This document shows positions 3,922 through 48,035 of a DNA stretch of 64,000 nt, in pieces. The notes under the pieces were generated by a model, which saw only the letters and a list, made by a program, of their open reading frames with translations, made no database searches and had not been told where the DNA came from. Origin of the DNA: Tubulanus polymorphus (taxonomy: Eukaryota > Animalia > Nemertea); assembly GCF_964204645.1 (NCBI RefSeq), contig NC_134034.1, forward strand, positions 1,426,072-1,490,071, written 5' to 3'. Position numbers and translations under genes: made by a program. The stretch's first letter is position 1; every line of letters starts with the position of its first letter.

Positions 3922-4430
3922 GGTGATGTCATAGGGGGCATTAGATAGAGATAGCCAACTTCATTGGAAGGGTTTTTATATTGAATTACTGATCGATGAT
4001 TTAGATGATGTCATAGGTGGATTCGTGGAGGCATCTTTTCTAGAGCTGTCAATGGATTAAAATACTAGTTGACAACTTGATGATGTCATAGGGGGATTTA
4101 CGGAGGCAGACATGTTTTCTAGAAGTGTCTATAGATCAAATCACTAGTAGGACAGTTTGATGATGTCATAGAGGGATTTATGGAGGCAGACATGTTTTCT
4201 AGAAGTGTCTATAGATCAAATCACTGCTAGGTAATTTGATGATGTCATAGGGAGATTTGTGGGTGCTGACATATTAATATCTTAAGTGTCTAGATAAAGA
4301 TAGTAGGTAACTTTATGATGTCGGACATTTATGGAAGGTTTTTAGATCCTAGTAGAAACATTGATGATGTCATTAGGGGATTTGGATCTTGAAGTTCAAA
4401 TCACTTGTAGGAAGTTCGATGAGGTCAACA
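3922..4430 (+). repeat. 79-bp dispersed minisatellite family (GATGATGTCATAGGGGGATTTATGGAGGCAGACATCTTTTCTAGAAGTGTCTATAGATCAAATCACTAGTAGACAATTT)
   Basis: About 6 degenerate tandem units. Confidence 0.9.
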
Positions 4431-7300: not shown

Positions 7301-7920
7301 GAAAGGAATTTCTGTTGTTGAATATCTCATAACGGGCCGTCATTATTGTGATCACATGTGGATAAAACTATTGAAAACAAAACGATGCGATCCACCGCAA
7401 ACACTAGGCATCATAGCAAACGATGATTTAGAACGATATAAAATGTCTCTGGGTCAAAGTCGGTTGTCAGTGCAGCTTAGGTAGAAATCGGTTTTTTTTC
7501 ACCGGGATAAATTACGTCATTCGTCGTCTGCCGAGATGACGTAGTTCCGGCGAGTGCCCGGATTTAAAACATCAGAGCCGTTGAGGTTTAAATTCGGGCG
7601 TCACTAATCCGCGGCTACGGACGAACAACGCGTAGAAATAAAAGAGGGAACGAATAAAGGAGGGATTGTTTGATTGGCAAACTAAGGGGAAGAAGAAAAG
7701 TGCAATGGTTTGAAAGATGAGTTCTATCTCTTGTTGTCGTTGAAGCCGGGGAAGATGCGGTTCTTTGAAAAAGACCTCATTAGTAATTGATCAAAAGTAT
7801 AACATCGGGGTCGAAATGTTATTTAGGTCACGTGTGCATCGTTTGTTTTTTTTTCATTTGACGCGGTTTAGAATCTATTGAAACATTTCATAAGTATAGA
7901 ACAAATAAGTCAAACTAAAT

Positions 7921-8385
7921 ACACACAACTGTGGAACAGGGTTTAAGAGTCAAATTGAACACACGCAACTGTGGAACTGGGTTCAGAGTCAAATTAAACC
8001 CAACACAACTGTGGAACTAGGTTCAGAGTTTAAATTGAACACACACAACTGTGGAACTGGGTTCAGAGTCAAATTGAACCCACACTACCGTGGAACTGGG
8101 TTCAGAGTTCAATTAAACACACACAACTGTGGAACTGGATCCAGAGTCTAATTAAACCCACACGTATAGGACTGGGTTCAGAGTCAAATTGAACTCACAC
8201 AACTGTGGAACTGGGTTCAGAGTCTAATTGAACCTACACAACTGTGGAACTGAGTTCAGAGTCAAATTAAACCCACACAACTGTGGAACTGAGTCCAGAG
8301 TCAAATTAAACCCACACAACTGTGGAACTGAGTCCAGAGTCAAATTAAACCCACACAACTGTAGAACTGGGTTAAGAGTCTAATA
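7921..8385 (+). repeat. 39-bp minisatellite family (CCACACAACTGTGGAACTGGATTCAGAGTCAAATTAAAC), about 12 units
   Basis: Direct tandem periodicity. Confidence 0.95.
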
Positions 8386-12704: not shown

Positions 12705-13100
12705 TGATGTCATAGGGGGATTTGTGGAGAGGTAGTTTCCTTGTACTTCCAACAATCAGATCGGTAATTTGATGATCTCATAGGGGGATTTATGGACGTA
12801 GACATCTTTTTCGGAAGTGGTGTCTTTAGATCAAATCAATAGTGGGCAACTGAATGATGTCATAGGGAGAATTATGGAGGCAGACATCTTTTTCGGAAGT
12901 GTCTATAGATCTAATCACTAGTACACAATGATGTCATAGGGGAATTTATGGAGGCAGACATCCTTTCTGGAAGTGTCTATAGATCGAATCAATAGTAGAC
13001 AATTCGATGATGTCATAGGGGGATCTATGGAGGCAGACATCATTTCTAAAATTGTCTATAGATCAAATTAATAGTAGACAATCAGATGACGTCATAGGGA
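12705..13100 (+). repeat. 79-bp family cluster
   Basis: About 5 units. Confidence 0.9.
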
Positions 13101-13924: not shown

Positions 13925-13996
13925 TCCTCGGTAGTATAGTGGTGAGTATCCGCGCCTGTCACGTGCGAGACCCGGGTTCGATTCCCGGCCGGGGAG
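13925..13996 (+). tRNA. tRNA-Asp(GTC)
   Basis: TCCTCGGTAGTATAGTGGTGAGTATCCGCGCCTGTCACGTGCGAGACCCGGGTTCGATTCCCGGCCGGGGAG, 72 nt. Full cloverleaf, A and B boxes, and a T5 terminator 2 nt downstream. Confidence 0.97.
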
Positions 13997-14469: not shown

Positions 14470-14892
14470 AGGATTCCGTTTGTGGTGAGTGAGGGTCCAC
14501 CAGGTGTCGTTAGTGCGCAGTAGGATATCAACGCCCGCCGTAATGGTGGATTCCACTTGCAGCAAGTGAGGATCCAGCAGGTGTCGCTAGTGTGCAGTAG
14601 GACATCGACTACTGCGGTAACATAGGATTCCACTTGTGGCATGTGAGGATCCACCAGATGTCGCTAGTGTGCAGTAGGACATCAACTACTGCGACAAGAG
14701 AGGATTCCACTTGTGGCAAGCAAGGAACCACCAGATGTCGCTAGTATAGTGACTCGGTCTTCCCCGTTCAATTTTTAACTATATTTCAATGTAACACCTG
14801 ATCAACTTTCCTTCCCTTTAGCTAAGCAAATCGATGGGACTTCCAATAACGCTACTGCGGCAATAGAGGATTCCACTTTATGGCAAGCGAGG
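14470..14892 (-). repeat. 77-bp dispersed minisatellite family (GTAGTTGATGTCCTACTGCACACTAGCGACACCTGGTGGATCCTCACTTGCCACAAGTGGAATCCTCTATTGCCGCA)
   Basis: About 3.5 units plus a fragment. Confidence 0.9.
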
Positions 14893-19292: not shown

Positions 19293-19775
19293 GAGCGACA
19301 CCTGGTGGATCTTCACTTGCCACGAGTGGAATCCTCTAGTGTCGCAGAATTCGGTGTCTTACTGCGCACTAACGACACCTGGTGGATCCTCACTTGCCAC
19401 AAGTGGAATCCTCTATTGCCGCAGTAGTTGGTGTTCTATACTGCACACTAGCGACACGTGGTGAATCCTTACTTTCCACAAGTGGAATCTTCTATTGCCG
19501 CAGCAGTCGATGTCTCACAGCACACAATCGACACCTGGTGTATCCTCACTTGCCACAAGTGAGTGGAATTCTCTATTATCGCAGTAGTTAATGCCCTACT
19601 GCACACTAGCGACACCTGGTGGATCCTTACTTGCCACAAGTTGAATCTTCTATTGCCGCAGCAGTCGATGTCTCACTGCACAAAATCGACACCTGGTGGA
19701 TCCTCACTTGCCACAAGTGAGTGGAATCCTCTATTATCGCAGTAGTTAATGTCCTACTGCACACTAGCGACACCA
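19293..19775 (+). repeat. 77-bp family cluster
   Basis: About 6.5 units. Confidence 0.92.
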
Positions 19776-25044: not shown

Positions 25045-26222
25045 AATTTCCATATGACATCATCAAATGACCTACAGAGACAAAGACGTCTTTCTTTATA
25101 AATCCCCATATGGCATCATCAAAATATCTACGGGTGATAAGATCCCAAGACCTATTCATAGGAAAGATGAAACACTCCATAAATCCCCCTATGACATCAT
25201 AAAATTTCCTACAAGTGATTTGGTCTATAAACACTTCCAAAAAAGATGTCTGCCTCCATAAATCCCCCTATGACATCATAAAATTTCCTACAAGTGATTT
25301 GGTCCATAAACACTTCCAAAAAAGATGTCTGCCTCCATAAATCCCCCTATGACATCAAATAAGTAATGATTTGACTTGTAGACCTTTCTATGAAACATGG
25401 GTTGCAGGAAAACCAGTGGGCAGTTTGATGTCGTCACCGGGGGCATAACCGTAGGGAGAGTTATAGTTGTTAAATTAGTCCCGATAGCGGATGGATACGT
25501 GTGTATTGCGGCTAATGATTTAAGGAATAAATCACGTGTTACAGTCCTCGGCTAATAGCCTCGTTACGGGAGGTCGTACGATATGCATAATCGTAAACGA
25601 CAAATCGTCAATATACGACGGACGTGGGTTTACCGCTACTACTGGTCAAACTCAACGGTCATTTACTCCACGAGTACTGCTTAATCCGTACAGTGCTTTA
25701 TACGTTACCTATAAACGGCGAGTCATTAACGCGTTGACTCTTTAGGGAATCCCGCCGAGACTGAAGGGATTCGACCCCTCCCTCATCGATCTCAATTTAG
25801 GGGATAAAACCAGTCTCGCTCCTACGTGTTTGATCTATCGACCCTACAAGAAAGCGTGTCCGCCTTTTCCATAAATCACCCTATGACGTCATCAAATTGT
25901 CTACTAATGATTCGATCAATAGAAAAAGATGGCTGCCTCCATAAACCCTCCTATAACATCATCAAATGGTTAAGTATTGATTTAATCTAAAGCCACTTCT
26001 ATGAAAGATGTCTCCCTCCATAGATCCCCTTATGACATCATCAAATTATCTACTAGTGATTTGATCTAACACTTCTAGAAAACATATCTGCATTCCTAAA
26101 ACCCCATAATGACATCATCAAATTGTCTACTAGCGATTTGGTACATAGACATTTCTAGAAAAGATGCTGCCTTCATAAATCCCCTAATGGCAACATGAAA
26201 TTGTCTACTAGTGATTTGATCC
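25045..26222 (-). repeat. 79-bp family, two clusters (about 25045-25400 and 25868-26222)
   Basis: About 4-5 units each. Confidence 0.88.
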
Positions 26223-28707: not shown

Positions 28708-29670
28708 AACTGGATCCAGACAGAAATGAAACCCACACAACTGTGGAACTGGATCTAGAGACAAATTAAACCCACGCAACTGTGGAACTGGATTCAGAGT
28801 TAAATTAAACCCACACAACTGTGGAACTGGATTCCGAGTTAAATTAAACCCACACAACTGTGGAACTGGAATCCGAGTTAAATTAAACCCACACAACTGT
28901 GGAACTGGGTCCAGAGTCAAATTAAACCCACACAACTGTGGAACTGGGTTCAGAGTCATATTAGACCCACGCAACTGTGGAACTGGATCTAGAGACAAAT
29001 TAAACCCACACAACTGTGGAACTGGATTCAGAGTTAAATTAAACCCACGCAACTGTGGAACTGGATCCAGAGTCAAATTAAACCCATACAACTGTGGAAC
29101 TGGATCTAGAGACAAATTAAACCCACACAACTGTGGAACTGGATTCAGAGTTAAATTAAACCCACGCAACTGTGGAACTGGATTCAGAGTCAAATTAAAC
29201 CCACACAACTGTGGAACTGGATTCCGAGTTAAATTAAACCCACACAACTGTGGAACTGGATTCAGAGTTTAATTAAACCCACACAACTGTGGAACTGGAT
29301 TCCGAGTTAAATTGGCCACACAACTGTGGAACTGGATTCCGAGTTAAATTAAACCCACACAACTGTGGAACTGGGTTCAGAGTCATATTAGACCCACACA
29401 ACTGTGGAACTCGGTCCAGAGTCAAATTGCACCCACACAACTGTGGAACTCGGTCCAGAGTCAAATTAAACCCACACAACTGTGGAACTGGATTTAGAGT
29501 CGAATTATACCAGCACACTGTGGAACTGGATCGAGAGTCGAATTAAACCCACACAACTGTGGAACTGGATTCAGAGTCGAATTAACCCCACACAGTGGAA
29601 CTCGGCTCAGAGTTATATCAGACCCACACAGTTAATGTGGAACTGGGTCTAGAGTCGAATTAAACCCACA
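28708..29670 (+). repeat. 39-bp minisatellite family, about 24 units
   Basis: Tandem periodicity; 13-aa period in the spurious ORFs. Confidence 0.95.
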
Positions 29671-31219
29671 CCCAAACTCCCACGCTATGCAACTGCTATA
29701 TCCCCAAATTGACCCATCATTTATGAACGTACAGTAATTTTCTGTAAAACTTTAAAAAAAACCCACGAAAGCCGCGACAATTTCGTCAGAAATTTCCCTC
29801 GCGGCATCGCTACCAAACACAGCCGTATCATTTTTATAGCGATTAAGTGAAAAAGAAATGGTCCTACCTTAATTATCGTCAACAACACGGGACGAAGGCG
29901 GTGCTTGAGACGCGGTAGAATCTATCGCGTTTTTAAATCCAAACATGCTGTAATCATCGTCTACGATATGATAATTATGTTATGGTTGTGGTATAGCTAT
30001 GATGATCGTTTGTATTTGTATCGTACGGTAATTCTGCTGACGGCCTGCGGCGGCGGTGGCGGGCGAGTTACACTGAGATACACACTCAGATACATTGCCG
30101 CCGCTTGCGTTTAGTGTCTGCTCACGCGTAGCGACCTGCCTCCCGCTTCGAAATATTATTCAATCAGACAATTAGACCGTTATTTCAAAATCTCGGGCAC
30201 TCGGCCACAAATACTTGACCGTCCCTATTCGTTCGAAATAGTATTCAATTTGGGATGAGTTAGTCGACTATTTGCGCACAAAGTGAAACCGAATGTCAGT
30301 TAGTCGGAAATATAAAATCCGCAACTTCGGACTTATTTCCGAGATGGCCGACTCTGTGAATTTCTTAAGACCGAGCGCGTTCGATTATTAGGACTGACCA
30401 GTTCGCCGTTCAGGAGCGGATCTGGGGTCAGTTTTTTCTCGGAAGGGTGCACCCCCGAAATAGAGCTATCAAATACATCATATTAAAAGGGTACCCCGAA
30501 TGAAAACTAATCGAAAAACAAAAACTCATTTTTGGAAATATAGACAAAAATTATGAATAAGCACTTTAAACAGTTAGATATGTTTCATTGGGCCGTAAAA
30601 TTTGATTTAGGGGTGCGCATTTCCTGCGTCTCCCTGGAGCGTCCCTGCCATGAGTGCATATTCCCTTCGAGCCTATAAACTCAAGGACACATTCCAGCTT
30701 CCATTTTCATTATTAGCGCGCAGGGATTTTCTTCACAACACACTTTCTTTTAAACGGATAGAAAAATGATTCTACGTTGAACAGAAACAGGCAGCCGGCG
30801 CGCGCACGGCGAGCTGTGCGGAGAGTCGACCGACGATCTCTGACGAGATGATGGTTTTATGCGCGGTCGGGAACTCCTACCGTTCTCAACAGGTATTCGC
30901 ACGGGATTCTGAGAGCTACCGACTAAAACAGATCCTATCTCTCTAAACGCATCAACGATGTTTTTAAAAGTGACTCACTCCTTATACTTTTTGTTTTGTT
31001 TTACTCCGCAATATTTTTTTTGTTTTTACGCTATGTGATTATTAGGGGGTGTAAAGGGGTTGCGAGGTACGCAGAAATTATGTTCAAGAGTATGAATGAA
31101 GCCTGTATGTTTAGAAGTAAAGAGCTCACGTTCTACAGATCCACACTTCCACATAGTTCTACAATTCTACAGTACCGCAGTCTCATATTTCTACAGATCA
31201 CTAAGTTTACATTTTTTTC

Positions 31220-33965: not shown

Positions 33966-34604
33966 TCAATTAAATCTCTTGAAAGGATCAAGGATACTTA
34001 TCTCCAATGCTGTTGCTAATTAAGGGAATTTAATTACAGTTCTGGCGTCGCCAATGAGTGATGAATATCGAAAACCTCGATTGTTGACCTCTAAATGACC
34101 TCTAGAGGTTGACCTCCATATGACTTCGCTTCCGACTCATTTCCGGTAACAGACTTGTGACAGAGATGACAAAAAGGCGACTCGGATTCTTTCGTTCCGA
34201 ATTATCAATGGAGGCATTGTTTTTTATCAAGCCCAGGGGGGACCGTTTCGTAAAATTCGTCATCTGAAAATTAGATGCAACTCCCTCTCCCTCTCCCTGC
34301 GTCGATCGCTGCGTCATTCAAAAAGTAAGAGTCACAAAACATGAACGGCTGCAAGGAAGATACCATTCTCTCCCGACGGGAGTTAGGGAAAGTGCTTAAT
34401 TGACATTCTTTCGACGAAGTGACATTGCGTACAAGGACAACGCAGCGAAACCCCGGTGCTAACACGCCTCAGGGCTGTTTTATGCGCGCGATTGAAGGTC
34501 CCGGGACGCCGATAATGACTCGATGACAAAAACGTGCGCGCAACCAAAATGAACTTAATGCCGACAATGAGGTATGTATATAGACGAGGAGAAATAACCT
34601 GTAC

Positions 34605-34642
34605 GCCTGATGATGGCTAACAATTGTTAGCCGAAACGTCGC
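34605..34642 (+). ncRNA. Solitary minimal hammerhead ribozyme motif (Penelope-like element type)
   Basis: gc-CTGATGA-T-GGCTAAC-AATT-GTTAGCC-GAAA-CG-TC-gc. Perfect core, 7-bp stem II, ACGU palindrome and GUC triplet; stem I is short. Confidence 0.65.
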
Positions 34643-34737
34643 TCCTCAAATACAATCATTCTGATATAGAATCTTGGCTTCGTGATTGTGGGAATTCTCG
34701 CGACGAGCTATGTATATGTTAGCACATCAGTACACGC

Positions 34738-39650: not shown

Positions 39651-39722
39651 CTCCCCGGCCGGGAATCGAACCCGGGTCTCGCACGTGACAGGCGCGGATA
39701 CTCACCACTATACTACCGAGGA
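39651..39722 (-). tRNA. tRNA-Asp(GTC), identical to the copy at 13925
   Basis: The reverse complement is the same 72-mer. A T4 run lies 5 nt downstream on the minus strand. Confidence 0.97.
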
Positions 39723-42439: not shown

Positions 42440-42935
42440 CAATTCGATGACGTCATAGGGGATATATGAAGACGGACAACATATTTTCTGTCTATAGTTA
42501 AATCACTAGGTAGACAATTTGATGATGTCATAGGGAGATTTATTAAATTAGACAATTTTCTAGAAGTGTCTATGATCAAATAACTAGTAAACAATTTGAT
42601 GATGTCATAGGGAGATTTATTAAGTTAGACAATTTTCTAGAAGTGTCTATGATCAAATAACTAGTAAACAATTTGATGATGTCATAAGGGGATTTATGGA
42701 GGCAGACATCTTTTCTAGAAATGTCTATAGATCAAATCGCTAGTAAACAATTTGATGACGTCATAAGGGGATTTATGGAGGCAGACATCTTTTCTAGAAG
42801 TGTCTATAGATCAAATCGCTAGTAAACAATTTGATGATGCCATAAGGGGATTTATGGAGGCAGACATCTTTTCTAGAAGTGTCTATAGATCAAATCACTA
42901 GTAAACAATTTGATGATGCCATAGGGGGATTTATG
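42440..42935 (+). repeat. 79-bp family cluster
   Basis: About 6 units; the best-conserved copies are at 42675-42935. Confidence 0.92.
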
Positions 42936-43819
42936 CAGGCAGGGCTTCCTTCTGGATGGCCCATGGCGCGCCGATGGTTTCTATTCCGCCAACACGCCGG
43001 GATCGTCTGTGCATCTGAAACTTATGCCATCAGACCGATAAATAACTTCAAACGCTCTCGGGCTCCACGTGAATACCGCGTGTTCATTTCAATTATACGT
43101 GATAAAATATTACTCCAAAACCGTCCCTGGCACGTAATTACTTCGCCCGCTTAAGCGTGATTAATTACCGCATTGAACCGACAAAACCAGTCGCCGTCCC
43201 GTGCGGCAGTATTTCATTCTTGAAACTGAATTTAAAAAAAAACTGCTCCGAACAATTTTCTATTTATCATATGGAAATTCGGGACCGCAGTCTGGTCTTA
43301 TTCCGTCGGGTCGACTGGCGGTCCAACGACCTTGTGCGTTGACGACGTGACCTTCGTGGCGAGGTGTCGTTAATTTCGAATCACATATATAAAATATATG
43401 TATAAATATAATCCGGGCTCGATCAAGCCGCGATCTCTCGGCGCTCGCTCGCGGCGGATAATTAGCTATTTGTTGCTTTTATTTATTGCCAGCTTTGTCA
43501 ACAAACCAATTTAGCGCTACACCTTAATTTCTCGAGACTGCATACATCATCCGTCTTAGGTTTCAACGCCGCCCAAGCCGCCGCCGCCGCCGCCGACACC
43601 GGCGTGCGGCACGCACGTTTGTCATTGTGTTCAAAGTTGAATTGTTCCTCTCTCTCTCGCGCTCGCTTTCTTAATCCCGAGAAAAATAATAACATTGATG
43701 AATTTGACTGCGAGTCGAATGAATTATCGATAGACCTTTCACTGCTCGTGGGCTCTCAATCACCTGCTCACTGTGTTCACCCGTTCATCCAGCTTCCGTC
43801 AGTCCTCTCCACTTACCCT

Positions 43820-46220: not shown

Positions 46221-47076
46221 AAGGAATACAGTATTCCTGAAGATGACTATTAGGATATAGTCGAAACGTTGAATAAACTACACTAGCTCAAGGAATACAG
46301 TATTCCTGAAGATGACTATTAGGATATAGTCGAAACGTTGAATAAACTACACTAGCTCAAGGAATACAGTATTCCTGAAGATGACTATTAGGATAAAGTC
46401 GAAACGTTGAATAAACTACACTAGCTCAAGGAATACAGTATTCCTGAAGATGACTATTAGGATATAGTCGAAACGTTGAATAAACTACACTAGCTCAAGG
46501 AATACAGTATTCCTGAAGATGACTATTAGGATAAAGTCGAAACGTTGAATAAACTACACTAGCTCAAGGAATACAGTATTCCTGAAGATGACTATTAGGA
46601 TATAGTCGAAAGGTTGAATTAACTACACTAGCTCAAGGAATACAGTATTCCTGAAGATGACTATTAGGATATAGTCGAAACGTTGAATAAACTACACTAG
46701 CTCAAGGAATACAGTATTCCTGAAGATGACTATTAGGATATAGTCGAAACGTTGAATAAACTACACTAGCTCAAGGAATACAGTATTCCTGAAGATGACT
46801 ATTAGGGTTAGTCGAAACGTCGAATAAACTACACTAGCTCAAGGAATACAGTATTCCTGAAGATTACTACTAGGATATAGTCGAAACGTCGAATAAACTA
46901 CACTAGCTCAAGGAATACAGTATTCCTGAAGATGACTATTAGGATATAGTCGAAACGTTGAATAAACTACACTAGCTCAAGGAATACAGTATTCCTGAAG
47001 ATGACTATTAGGATATAGTCGAAACGTTGAATAAACTACACTAGCTCAAAGAATACAGTATTCCTGAAGATGACTA
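46221..47076 (+). ncRNA. Tandem array of 12 (+1 partial) 69-bp units, each containing a minimal type I hammerhead ribozyme (Penelope-like/retrozyme type)
   Basis: Unit AAGGAATACAG-TATTC-CTGAAGA-T-GACTAT-TAGGAT-ATAGTC-GAAA-CG-TT-GAATA-AACTACACTAGCTC. It has the CUGANGA core, a 6-bp stem II, GAAA, a palindromic ACGU mini-stem III, a UH cleavage site (GUU; GUC in the units at 46773 and 46841), stem I TATTC/GAATA, and AATAAA just downstream. Confidence 0.8.
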
Positions 47077-47868
47077 CATCTTGCACAATACCAACAAAAC
47101 TCTTTGGACCAACGCCCGTGCCCCCAGACGTATTACATCTAAACCATAAAGAAATCTTACATCATTCGAATTTTTTCAACCGTTAACGGTTTTCACCAGC
47201 GCGCGACCAATCAACGCGCTCGATCGGGGCGGTTTTGAAATTTAGCCGTGTCGGATAATAATTGATTGAAAACCCGACGCGTCGTGGCGACGTGCTCTTC
47301 GACACCGAAAACACGGTGGTGACTTCGGATTTAATTGAATTGCGGTCTGGTTATAGGACTAACACATCCGGCGCCGTTTATTAGCGATACTTTATTCGAA
47401 ACATGTTGGCAAGAAATTGCATTTTTGATCCCTGGAGACCCGTCACAACAACTCCGCGCCACGTCGAGTTTACTATACTAGAAGCCATTCTTTATGCGTG
47501 TGATTAAAACGTTTCAATGAATATTGTTGAAAACGTATATCGCAGACGATACGATACGCAGACGATCGGTCGCTGGGCGGTTCGAAATCGCTGACGCGCG
47601 AATTGGCTCGAAAGAAACTATTGTAACTGATTTCGACGTATTTTCGGTGTCGGAGCCACGTGCGAACCTATTTTCGTCTCCGAGATCATGAGCGTCGCGT
47701 CAATGATGCCGGAAACGCTACCGTTGAAATCGATAATCCACCAGGTGTCGCTAGTAGTTACTGCTGAAATTCGAATAGACGTTTTTCTCTAAGATTGAAT
47801 TTTCATTAAATCTATACCGATCACTGAAATCAACGCATGTCTCGGATCCATGATAGAGTTTTAATTCA

Positions 47869-48035
47869 CGATGTTTCGACCAAATTCTATGAGTCATTTT
47901 TGAAACGTTTTTGAGAAAATGATATGGAATCGAGTCACTACTCTCTTAGTCCTTGAAATTGGCTCACAGAATTGAGTCTAAGCGCCACTACTCTTTTAGT
48001 TTCGAAAATGGCCGATAGAAATGATTCTGAACGTT
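47869..48035. repeat. Degenerate hammerhead-like/Penelope pLTR-like motif copies (1 on minus, about 3 on plus)
   Basis: Minus strand 47869-47903 reads TCAAAAATGACTCATAGAATTTGGTCGAAACATCG. Plus-strand relatives are CTTGAAATTGGCTCACAGAATTGAGTCTAAGCG and TCGAAAATGGCCGATAGAAATGATTCTGAACGTT, separated by ACTACTCTYTTAGT. Confidence 0.35.

Follow-up and report, generated by a model that had tools for sequence, protein, structure and literature searches.

The stretch of Tubulanus polymorphus DNA analysed here (contig NC_134034.1, positions 1,426,072 to 1,490,071 of the forward strand; 64,000 nucleotides, hereafter the window) carries a tandem array of short units, each built around a motif of the hammerhead ribozyme type. 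Tandem Repeats Finder (TRF) describes the array as 12.4 copies of a 69-bp period, with 97% matches and no indels, and its limits and individual units are listed in Table 1. On the plus strand the motif reads TATTC/CTGAAGA/T/GACTAT-TAGGAT-ATAGTC/GAAA/CG/T/T or C/GAATA and is followed by a 25-nt linker, which starts with AACTAC, so that an AATAAA straddles the boundary between hammerhead and linker. On inspection the motif is intact in 10 of the 12 full units. In two of these ten, U30 is replaced by A, which produces an A·A mismatch in helix II and reduces it to the 4 bp beside the core, as in unit 3; unit 9 satisfies the strict search descriptor described below despite its shorter helix II and loop. 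The two damaged units are unit 6, in which a C15.2>G change gives GAAAGG and breaks the ACGU palindrome, and unit 10, in which G10.1 is replaced by U. End mapping found both ends of the array to be non-canonical: the tail of the longer, 167-bp unit described below is missing, and the right end is cut within helix II.

Table 1. Array, hammerhead units and predicted cleavage site in the window (R1, covariance model described in the text)
Feature	Position	Strand	Description	Score or basis
Tandem array	46221–47076	+	12 full 69-bp units and an 18-bp partial 13th	TRF, sequence, end mapping
Unit 1, minimal hammerhead	46232–46275	+	intact	R1 54 bits, E 7.3e-14
Unit 1, predicted cleavage	46270/46271	+	between GAAACGUU and GAAUA	sequence
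Unit 2, minimal hammerhead	46301–46344	+	intact	R1 54 bits
Unit 3, minimal hammerhead	46370–46413	+	A30 variant	R1 49.7 bits
Unit 4, minimal hammerhead	46439–46482	+	intact	R1 54 bits
Unit 5, minimal hammerhead	46508–46551	+	A30 variant	R1 49.7 bits
Unit 6, hammerhead	46577–46620	+	damaged, GAAAGGTT; helix I 3′ strand GAATT	R1 46.3 bits
Unit 7, minimal hammerhead	46646–46689	+	intact	R1 54 bits
Unit 8, minimal hammerhead	46715–46758	+	intact	R1 54 bits
Unit 9, minimal hammerhead	46784–46826	+	helix II/loop 1 nt shorter (5 bp), triplet GUC	R1 44.7 bits
Unit 10, hammerhead	46852–46895	+	damaged: G10.1>U plus another change in helix II, triplet GUC	R1 39.5 bits
Unit 11, minimal hammerhead	46921–46964	+	intact	R1 54 bits
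Unit 12, minimal hammerhead	46990–47033	+	intact	R1 54 bits
Unit 13, truncated	47059–47076	+	TATTCCTGAAGATGACTA, stops in helix II	sequence

Identity of the repeated motif

The positions that define the minimal hammerhead core (C3-U4-G5-A6-N7-G8-A9, G12-A13-A14, A15.1/U16.1 and H17) are occupied in the ten intact units by CUGAAGA...GAAA-CG-U-U/C. Around this core the motif has a 5-bp helix I, a 6-bp helix II, an extra U between A9 and G10.1, and a G10.1–C11.1 pair; where stem III would be there is a palindromic ACGU, and no stem III is closed. Minimal hammerheads of Penelope-like elements (PLEs) have been described as having a helix I of 4–5 bp, a long helix II, and a palindrome at positions 15.2–16.2 that implies action as a dimer (Cervera & de la Pena 2014, PMC4209133), and all of these traits are found in the window motif.

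The assignment is supported by several searches. A covariance model (R1), constructed on the genome's other families of minimal hammerheads with the array's own family left out, scores all 12 full units, at 39.5–54 bits and E-values from 7e-14 to 2e-9. The strict descriptor finds 215 motifs in the window and 20 further loci and none in each of five shuffles, and the genome-wide hammerhead descriptor gives 2,859 matches versus 3 for the reversed pattern. The first 100 descriptor places listed, all on contig C1, contain at least four sequence families. In the sister families helices I and II differ in sequence yet pair, as in CCAC/GTGG with GGCTGT/ACAGCC, or ACAC/GTGT with GATCTC/GAGATC. Among seven family representatives, chosen by eye from the C1 places listed, both sides are changed in 8 of 11 pairs, and 88% of the cells pair, versus 24–46% for slid partners. 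The extra nucleotide after A9, the G10.1–C11.1 pair and ACGU are invariant across the listed families, in a search whose pattern itself fixed them; because of this, and because the representatives were picked by eye, the covariation backs the helices only. By sequence and structure the window motif is a bona fide minimal hammerhead of the PLE type, for which catalysis is predicted.

An earlier note on this DNA, made from its letters alone, had described 12 near-identical 69-bp units with a partial one, each carrying a minimal type I hammerhead of the PLE kind. The first point is confirmed by TRF and by the sequence, and the second by the core, the helices, the extra U and ACGU. The same note saw no reverse transcriptase open reading frame in the window; consistent with this, a screen of part of the window gave no Pfam match for two large open frames close to the array.

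Parent element, origin and distribution of the 69-bp unit

The genome (268 Mb, 77 contigs) was searched for the family, and 21 arrays were read directly, namely the one in the window and those at 20 further loci (L031–L050), together with three complete 167-bp units and a number of incomplete ones; none of the arrays read consists purely of 167-bp units. The 69-bp unit occurs in dozens of arrays on at least nine contigs (C1, C2, C3, C5, C6, C8, C9, C10 and C60). Its internal junction, the short junction CTCAAGGAATACAGTATTCCTGAAGA, has 1,443 occurrences in the genome (715 + 728) when one mismatch is allowed, and the control has none; the word that marks the long junction has 174, with none in the control. 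The wider search that the earlier note had suggested, for other arrays and for a PLE partner, therefore found both, the latter as described in the next paragraph. Units from different chromosomes differ at 0–3 of their 69 positions. The flanks of the 21 loci, inspected directly, are unrelated apart from family sequence; in an all-against-all BLAST of the flanks, family copies that were inverted or had diverged obscured the result, and it was replaced by this inspection and by end mapping on the long unit. The arrays lie mostly near chromosome or contig ends: for C2 and C3, two contigs of known length, 86 of the 87 listed places are within ~1.8 Mb of a contig end, and the window is at 1.43–1.49 Mb of a 14.3-Mb contig.

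The same hammerhead is found in a PLE. At L034, a 391-aa open frame contains an RVT_1 fragment and a GIY-YIG domain, and a hammerhead identical to that of the array is located ~300 nt past the stop of this frame and ~545 bp downstream of the GIY-YIG domain, followed by a tail homologous to that of the long unit. On C1 the hammerhead recurs 535–551 bp downstream of five GIY-YIG matches, on the same strand. A different PLE, which has an 817-aa frame, is followed at ~480–550 bp by a hammerhead of another family, and the genome contains at least 150 GIY-YIG matches, many of them in open frames of 817–841 aa. The PLE-type tail ends at about position 156–160 of the long unit in three copies, and the 167-bp unit is therefore essentially the terminal stretch of the PLE, from the hammerhead to the 3′ end. 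After the cleavage site, the arrays and L034 have GAATA (GAAUA in RNA, a 5-bp helix I), whereas many dispersed PLE copies have GAAAT (GAAAU, 3 bp).

The 167-bp unit consists of the minimal type I hammerhead of the PLE and ~110 nt homologous to the PLE tail. Many arrays pass at their 3′ end into a common tail (...AAGGAA followed by ACATTTCAGACTCTTTTATTCTTAGTGTGCAGGGATTTT...), and the 3′ half of the hammerhead together with the start of this tail, 85 nt in all, is repeated at 167-bp intervals in a great number of arrays, above all on C8. Long and short units are mixed within a single array at L046, where an exact 167-nt unit is present. The short unit has TA in place of the ~100 nt that separate AAGGAA from CAGTATTCC in the long one. 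It is 98 nt shorter overall and retains just the 44-nt hammerhead and the 25-nt linker. Dozens of loci share one and the same junction, and their flanks, where these were read, are unrelated; the deletion therefore occurred once, and the short form was dispersed afterwards. Local amplification, independently at every site, cannot account for it. The junction is thus a built-in marker that tells dispersal from local amplification. The free-standing ultra-minimal element of the earlier note becomes, with these mixed arrays, a 69-nt deletion derivative of a 167-nt repeat.

The array is thus a PLE-derived, non-autonomous hammerhead repeat of the kind called non-LTR retrozymes (LTR, long terminal repeat). 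Its non-autonomy, also proposed earlier, agrees with the open frames beside the arrays: no reverse transcriptase frame was found consistently at the 21 loci, the one exception being the truncated PLE at L034, and the large frames scanned near arrays encode G protein-coupled receptors (GPCRs), a VWA domain or a weak PI-PLC-X match, or have no match. Two of them are single-exon frames of the rhodopsin-family GPCR type a few kb from arrays, L033:175–1350 (−) and L048:2060–3334 (−), with 7tm_1 matches at E 3e-12 and 1e-17. Four points are new here: the unit's origin by deletion, the predominance of the short form over its parent, the identity of the hammerhead with that of its PLE, and the mosaic of variants within arrays described below.

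Loose ends in sequencing runs that contain the repeat confirm the long-unit junctions genome-wide, and strand-switch joints near the GGAATACAGTATTCC palindrome match head-to-head arrays at L035, L045, L048 and L049, where 69-bp arrays stand as inverted neighbours. The dispersed minimal hammerheads among the C1 descriptor places listed are also very often head-to-head inverted pairs, 50–700 bp apart, such as 273227(−)/273315(+), 1110967(−)/1111014(+), 6116994(−)/6117055(+) and 7856481(−)/7856535(+). Head-to-head inverted hammerhead pairs have been reported for PLE fragments of Schistosoma.

Two more hammerhead-like sequences were found in the window. A solitary minimal hammerhead of another family at 34602–34645 (+), TACGC-CTGATGA-T-GGCTAAC...GTTAGCC-GAAACGTC, scores 37.9 bits with R1 (E 6e-9) and is followed to ~34720 by a PLE-like tail (...GTGGGAATTC...), and looks like an isolated terminal piece of a PLE. 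The other, at 47865–47904 (−), lies on the opposite strand from the array, ~800 bp downstream of it, and is a weak, decayed hammerhead-like remnant (...ATGACTCATAGAATTTGGTCGAAACATCG...) that lacks CUGANGA (R1 E 0.004).

Predicted folding, array assembly and competing explanations

In a transcript of tandem units, the ACGU of each unit would pair with that of the next, the 3′ strand of helix I of the first would pair with the 5′ strand of the second, closed by the 25-nt linker, and the outer helix I strands would pair together, giving a properly nested double hammerhead. Two cuts in this structure would free exactly 69 nt, so that the computed fold bears out the earlier idea that neighbouring copies supply the dimer partner in cis. 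Cleavage would follow GAAACGUH, between it and GAAUAAAC, and would give RNAs of 69 or 167 nt. These products would carry a 5′-OH and a 2′,3′-cyclic phosphate and could be circularised by a tRNA ligase, a route demonstrated for animal retrozymes.

The way in which arrays are assembled can be probed through a variable position within them. Position 30 is occupied by U or, in 46% of the 229 units compared, by A, which costs one pair of helix II, and the succession of U30 and A30 neighbours is near-random in all 21 arrays (TT 62, AA 48, TA 46, AT 43); the rarer variants are restricted to one or two arrays each. Candidate sources of this mosaic are template switching, an old polymorphism shuffled by recombination, and a hypermutable site. 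The 3′ ends fall at long-unit positions 79–112 in 10 of the 21 arrays, and a PLE-type tail is found in two more, so that 12 of 21 end with a tail; the 5′ ends are at positions 3–10 in 9 of 19 arrays and at 18–26 in 6 of 19. These ends may be read as the result of copying tail-bearing multimeric templates. The spread would most likely have occurred in trans, by a PLE reverse transcriptase and GIY-YIG endonuclease, and the templates copied would have been multimeric RNAs that often retained a piece of the long tail.

The array is, on balance, probably a member of a young, dispersed, non-autonomous family that derives from the 3′ terminal region of a PLE (its pseudo-LTR, pLTR), spread in trans and potentially gives rise to self-processing RNA, a model that as a whole matches PMC7229834 and bioRxiv 10.64898/2026.07.22.740005. 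Its identity and origin can be asserted with considerable confidence; the self-processing of the RNA, which is predicted from modelled folds, is a tentative proposal with somewhat less than an even chance of being right.

A number of observations weigh against this explanation, most of them against its RNA part. The active fold of the 69-nt unit has a predicted energy of −12.3 kcal/mol bare and −16.9 with the remainder free to fold, and its minimum-energy fold −25.1; for the 167-nt unit the values are −32.0 and −43.6, so that the active fold lies 8–12 kcal/mol above the minimum in short and long unit alike. In the minimum-energy fold the linker sequence AGGAAUAC is paired with GUAUUCCU, and this pairing makes helix I and C3-U4 inaccessible. 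Cleavage is probably inefficient, since the GGAAUAC/GUAUUCC hairpin, itself a product of the deletion, is predicted to rival helix I and to hide C3 and U4. Energy modelling of this kind indicates only that the active fold differs from the minimum-energy fold, and cannot decide activity. The disfavoured active folds agree with the poor cleavage of PLE minimal hammerheads in vitro (PMC4209133), and 8 of 9 Xenopus dimers tested did not cleave (bioRxiv 10.64898/2026.07.22.740005). The repeat was found in four runs of one study, all contigs and none recorded as RNA: X1 resembles whole-genome DNA, with a depth of ~24 over the unique flanks, and X2–X4 show patchy flank cover and high repeat depth, which is no evidence of transcription because their kind is not on record. 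Variation in the core is no lower than at linker positions 48–60 (229 units, 21 arrays); with ~2% divergence the family is too young for selection on the core to be visible. Only one array in 21 ends at the cleavage site, the ends thus avoiding the predicted cut, and target-site duplications do not rise above the control (mean longest shared word 5.8 nt versus 5.4 nt for mismatched flanks, at boundaries that are uncertain). Finally, Rfam hammerhead models (RF00163 Hammerhead_1 and others) gave no match at the gathering score in the whole window, nor any at E ≤ 10 around the array, as is expected of a motif that lacks a closed stem III. A search with hammerhead models, proposed in the earlier note, thus succeeded with the sister-family covariance model, which scores 12 of 12 units, and drew a blank with those of Rfam.

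The silence of Rfam is also what a chance resemblance would produce, that is, an AT-rich minisatellite in which CUGANGA...GAAA is spelled by accident. This idea is refuted and retains a vanishingly small probability: the descriptor hardly matches when reversed and never in shuffles, the sister families show compensatory changes, the GIY-YIG domains of PLEs have the identical motif downstream of them at a constant distance, and the independent model reaches E 7e-14. More serious is an inert minisatellite, in which a PLE pLTR fragment became tandemised and spread as DNA only, through unequal crossing-over, extrachromosomal circular DNA or subtelomere exchange, with the hammerhead as a passenger and no 69-nt RNA. 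We regard it as unlikely, at perhaps one chance in a few. It accommodates the gathering of arrays in repeat-dense distal parts of chromosomes, in a window full of unrelated minisatellites, and equally the failure to detect target-site duplications, the core without excess conservation and the predicted energies; the confinement of rare variants to one or two arrays is what local amplification predicts, and local amplification by unequal crossover is invoked in bioRxiv 10.64898/2026.07.22.740005. DNA-only spread would nevertheless have to be efficient to carry one junction, in 1,443 units, to dozens of loci that are distributed over at least nine contigs and that have unrelated flanks where examined. 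The preferred 3′ end in the tail and the clustered 5′ starts look more like template-directed copying than random breakage, and a U30/A30 mosaic nearly without runs is unlike the outcome of slippage or unequal exchange.

The same mosaic bears on a strict rolling-circle model, put forward in the earlier note, by which each array would arise from reverse transcription of one self-processed 69-nt circular RNA. Such movement is thought to occur for animal retrozymes (PMC7229834), and it is consistent with the spacing of predicted cleavage sites, which equals the unit length, with arrays that start and stop at many phases of the unit, as the model allows, and with the L048 array, which ends precisely at GAAACGT(C). 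A single 69-nt circle predicts homogeneous arrays, and mosaics are observed in 21 of 21; the simplest version of the model is therefore contradicted. Within a single array long units alternate with short ones, the tail with which 12 of 21 arrays end is absent from a 69-nt circle, and the cleavage-site end is a single case, all of which makes the model very improbable. Slightly less so, if still distinctly unlikely, is a variant in which 69-nt units are transcribed and cut in double hammerheads with their neighbours to linear and circular RNAs of 69 nt, well below the size of any retrozyme circular RNA obtained in experiments, and a PLE reverse transcriptase hops between monomers of a mixed pool. 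If true, it would explain both the near-random U30/A30 mosaics and the predominance of the tail-less short form over its 167-nt parent.

Outside the array, the window resembles a repeat-dense distal chromosome region. It is packed with unrelated dispersed minisatellites with units of ~79, 39 and 77 bp, several arrays of each and in both orientations, and with long CT/GA-rich tracts; examples, in three groups, are at 3999–4258, 12766–13099, 25098–26221, 42489–42942 and 54004–54445; at 7908–8384, 28708–29671 and 57064–57597; and at 14488–14745, 19294–19774 and 59580–60709. The window also has two inverted pairs of tRNA genes, both with identical sequence or score within the pair, one at 13925–13996 (+) and 39651–39722 (−), and the other, with an intron-like insert of ~19 nt, at 58149–58240 (+) and 62653–62744 (−). 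Such pairs suggest large inverted duplications.

Comparison with known systems

The PLE minimal hammerheads of PMC4209133 share with the window motif the type I topology, the helix I of 4–5 bp and helix II of 6–8 bp, the unpaired nucleotide between A9 and G10.1, the G10.1–C11.1 pair, and the palindromic ACGU at 15.2–16.2 without a closed stem III, which implies a dimer. Also common to both are the terminal-repeat position downstream of the reverse transcriptase/GIY-YIG frame and the presence of many families per genome with compensatory changes. These hammerheads are found in Lunse et al. 2017 as well, going by the citation in PMC6765202. They occur once per pLTR, ~3 kb apart, whereas here they follow each other head to tail at a spacing of 69 bp, or of 167 bp in the parent unit. 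Tandem minimal hammerheads are mentioned for axolotl PLEs (PMC7229834).

Animal non-LTR retrozymes are likewise AT-rich tandem repeats with type I hammerheads, present as many dispersed arrays that lack LTRs, a primer-binding site and a polypurine tract. They too coexist with PLEs, contain pLTR-like sequence, and have multimers enriched at chromosome ends. A complete type I hammerhead in at least two consecutive units of a tandem repeat is the working definition of a retrozyme in bioRxiv 10.64898/2026.07.22.740005; the window array has 12 consecutive units, in a dispersed, non-coding family that coexists with PLEs and shows sequence kinship to the PLE pLTR. The animal retrozymes studied so far have units of 150–450 bp, canonical hammerheads with loop–loop contacts, and circular RNAs of ~170–400 nt (PMC7229834), whereas the present family, known from DNA, has a 69-bp unit and a minimal hammerhead with helix I closed by the 25-nt linker only. 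Of the retrozyme traits given by Cervera & de la Pena in 2020, the 69-bp unit has neither the loop 1–loop 2 contacts nor the 150–450 bp length, and its 167-bp parent is within the size range. Retrozyme consensus lengths of 51–972 bp, obtained computationally with canonical and minimal models (bioRxiv 10.64898/2026.07.22.740005), weaken the notion in the earlier note that the monomer is exceptionally short. If it is processed, the 69-nt unit would lower the minimum size of natural RNA elements that are circular or cleave themselves, and would show how little besides a ribozyme a PLE-dependent parasite needs.

Newt satellite 2 and avocado sunblotch viroid (ASBVd), as Forster et al. 1988 are cited in PMC4209133 and PMC6765202, resemble the array in their unstable stem III and in the use of tandem copies as partners. 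In those accounts the units measure 250–330 nt and cleavage is demonstrated, whereas here the partner is 69 nt away and cleavage is predicted.

The schistosome repeats Sm-alpha and Sj-alpha, which resemble short interspersed elements, are, like the present family, non-autonomous repeats of invertebrates that contain a type I hammerhead. Sm-alpha units are ~335 nt long, with a canonical hammerhead and a Pol III promoter, whereas the unit here is of 69 nt with a minimal hammerhead.

Animal retrozymes have been proposed to derive from PLE terminal repeats, on sequence evidence from Xenopus frogs (bioRxiv 10.64898/2026.07.22.740005), to which the direct demonstration in that preprint is limited. 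The origin described here matches this proposal of Li, Clavereau & Pollet, and it provides a clean case of it: the identical hammerhead in an autonomous element, the 167-bp intermediate and the 69-bp derivative are found together in one genome, and all of them are young.

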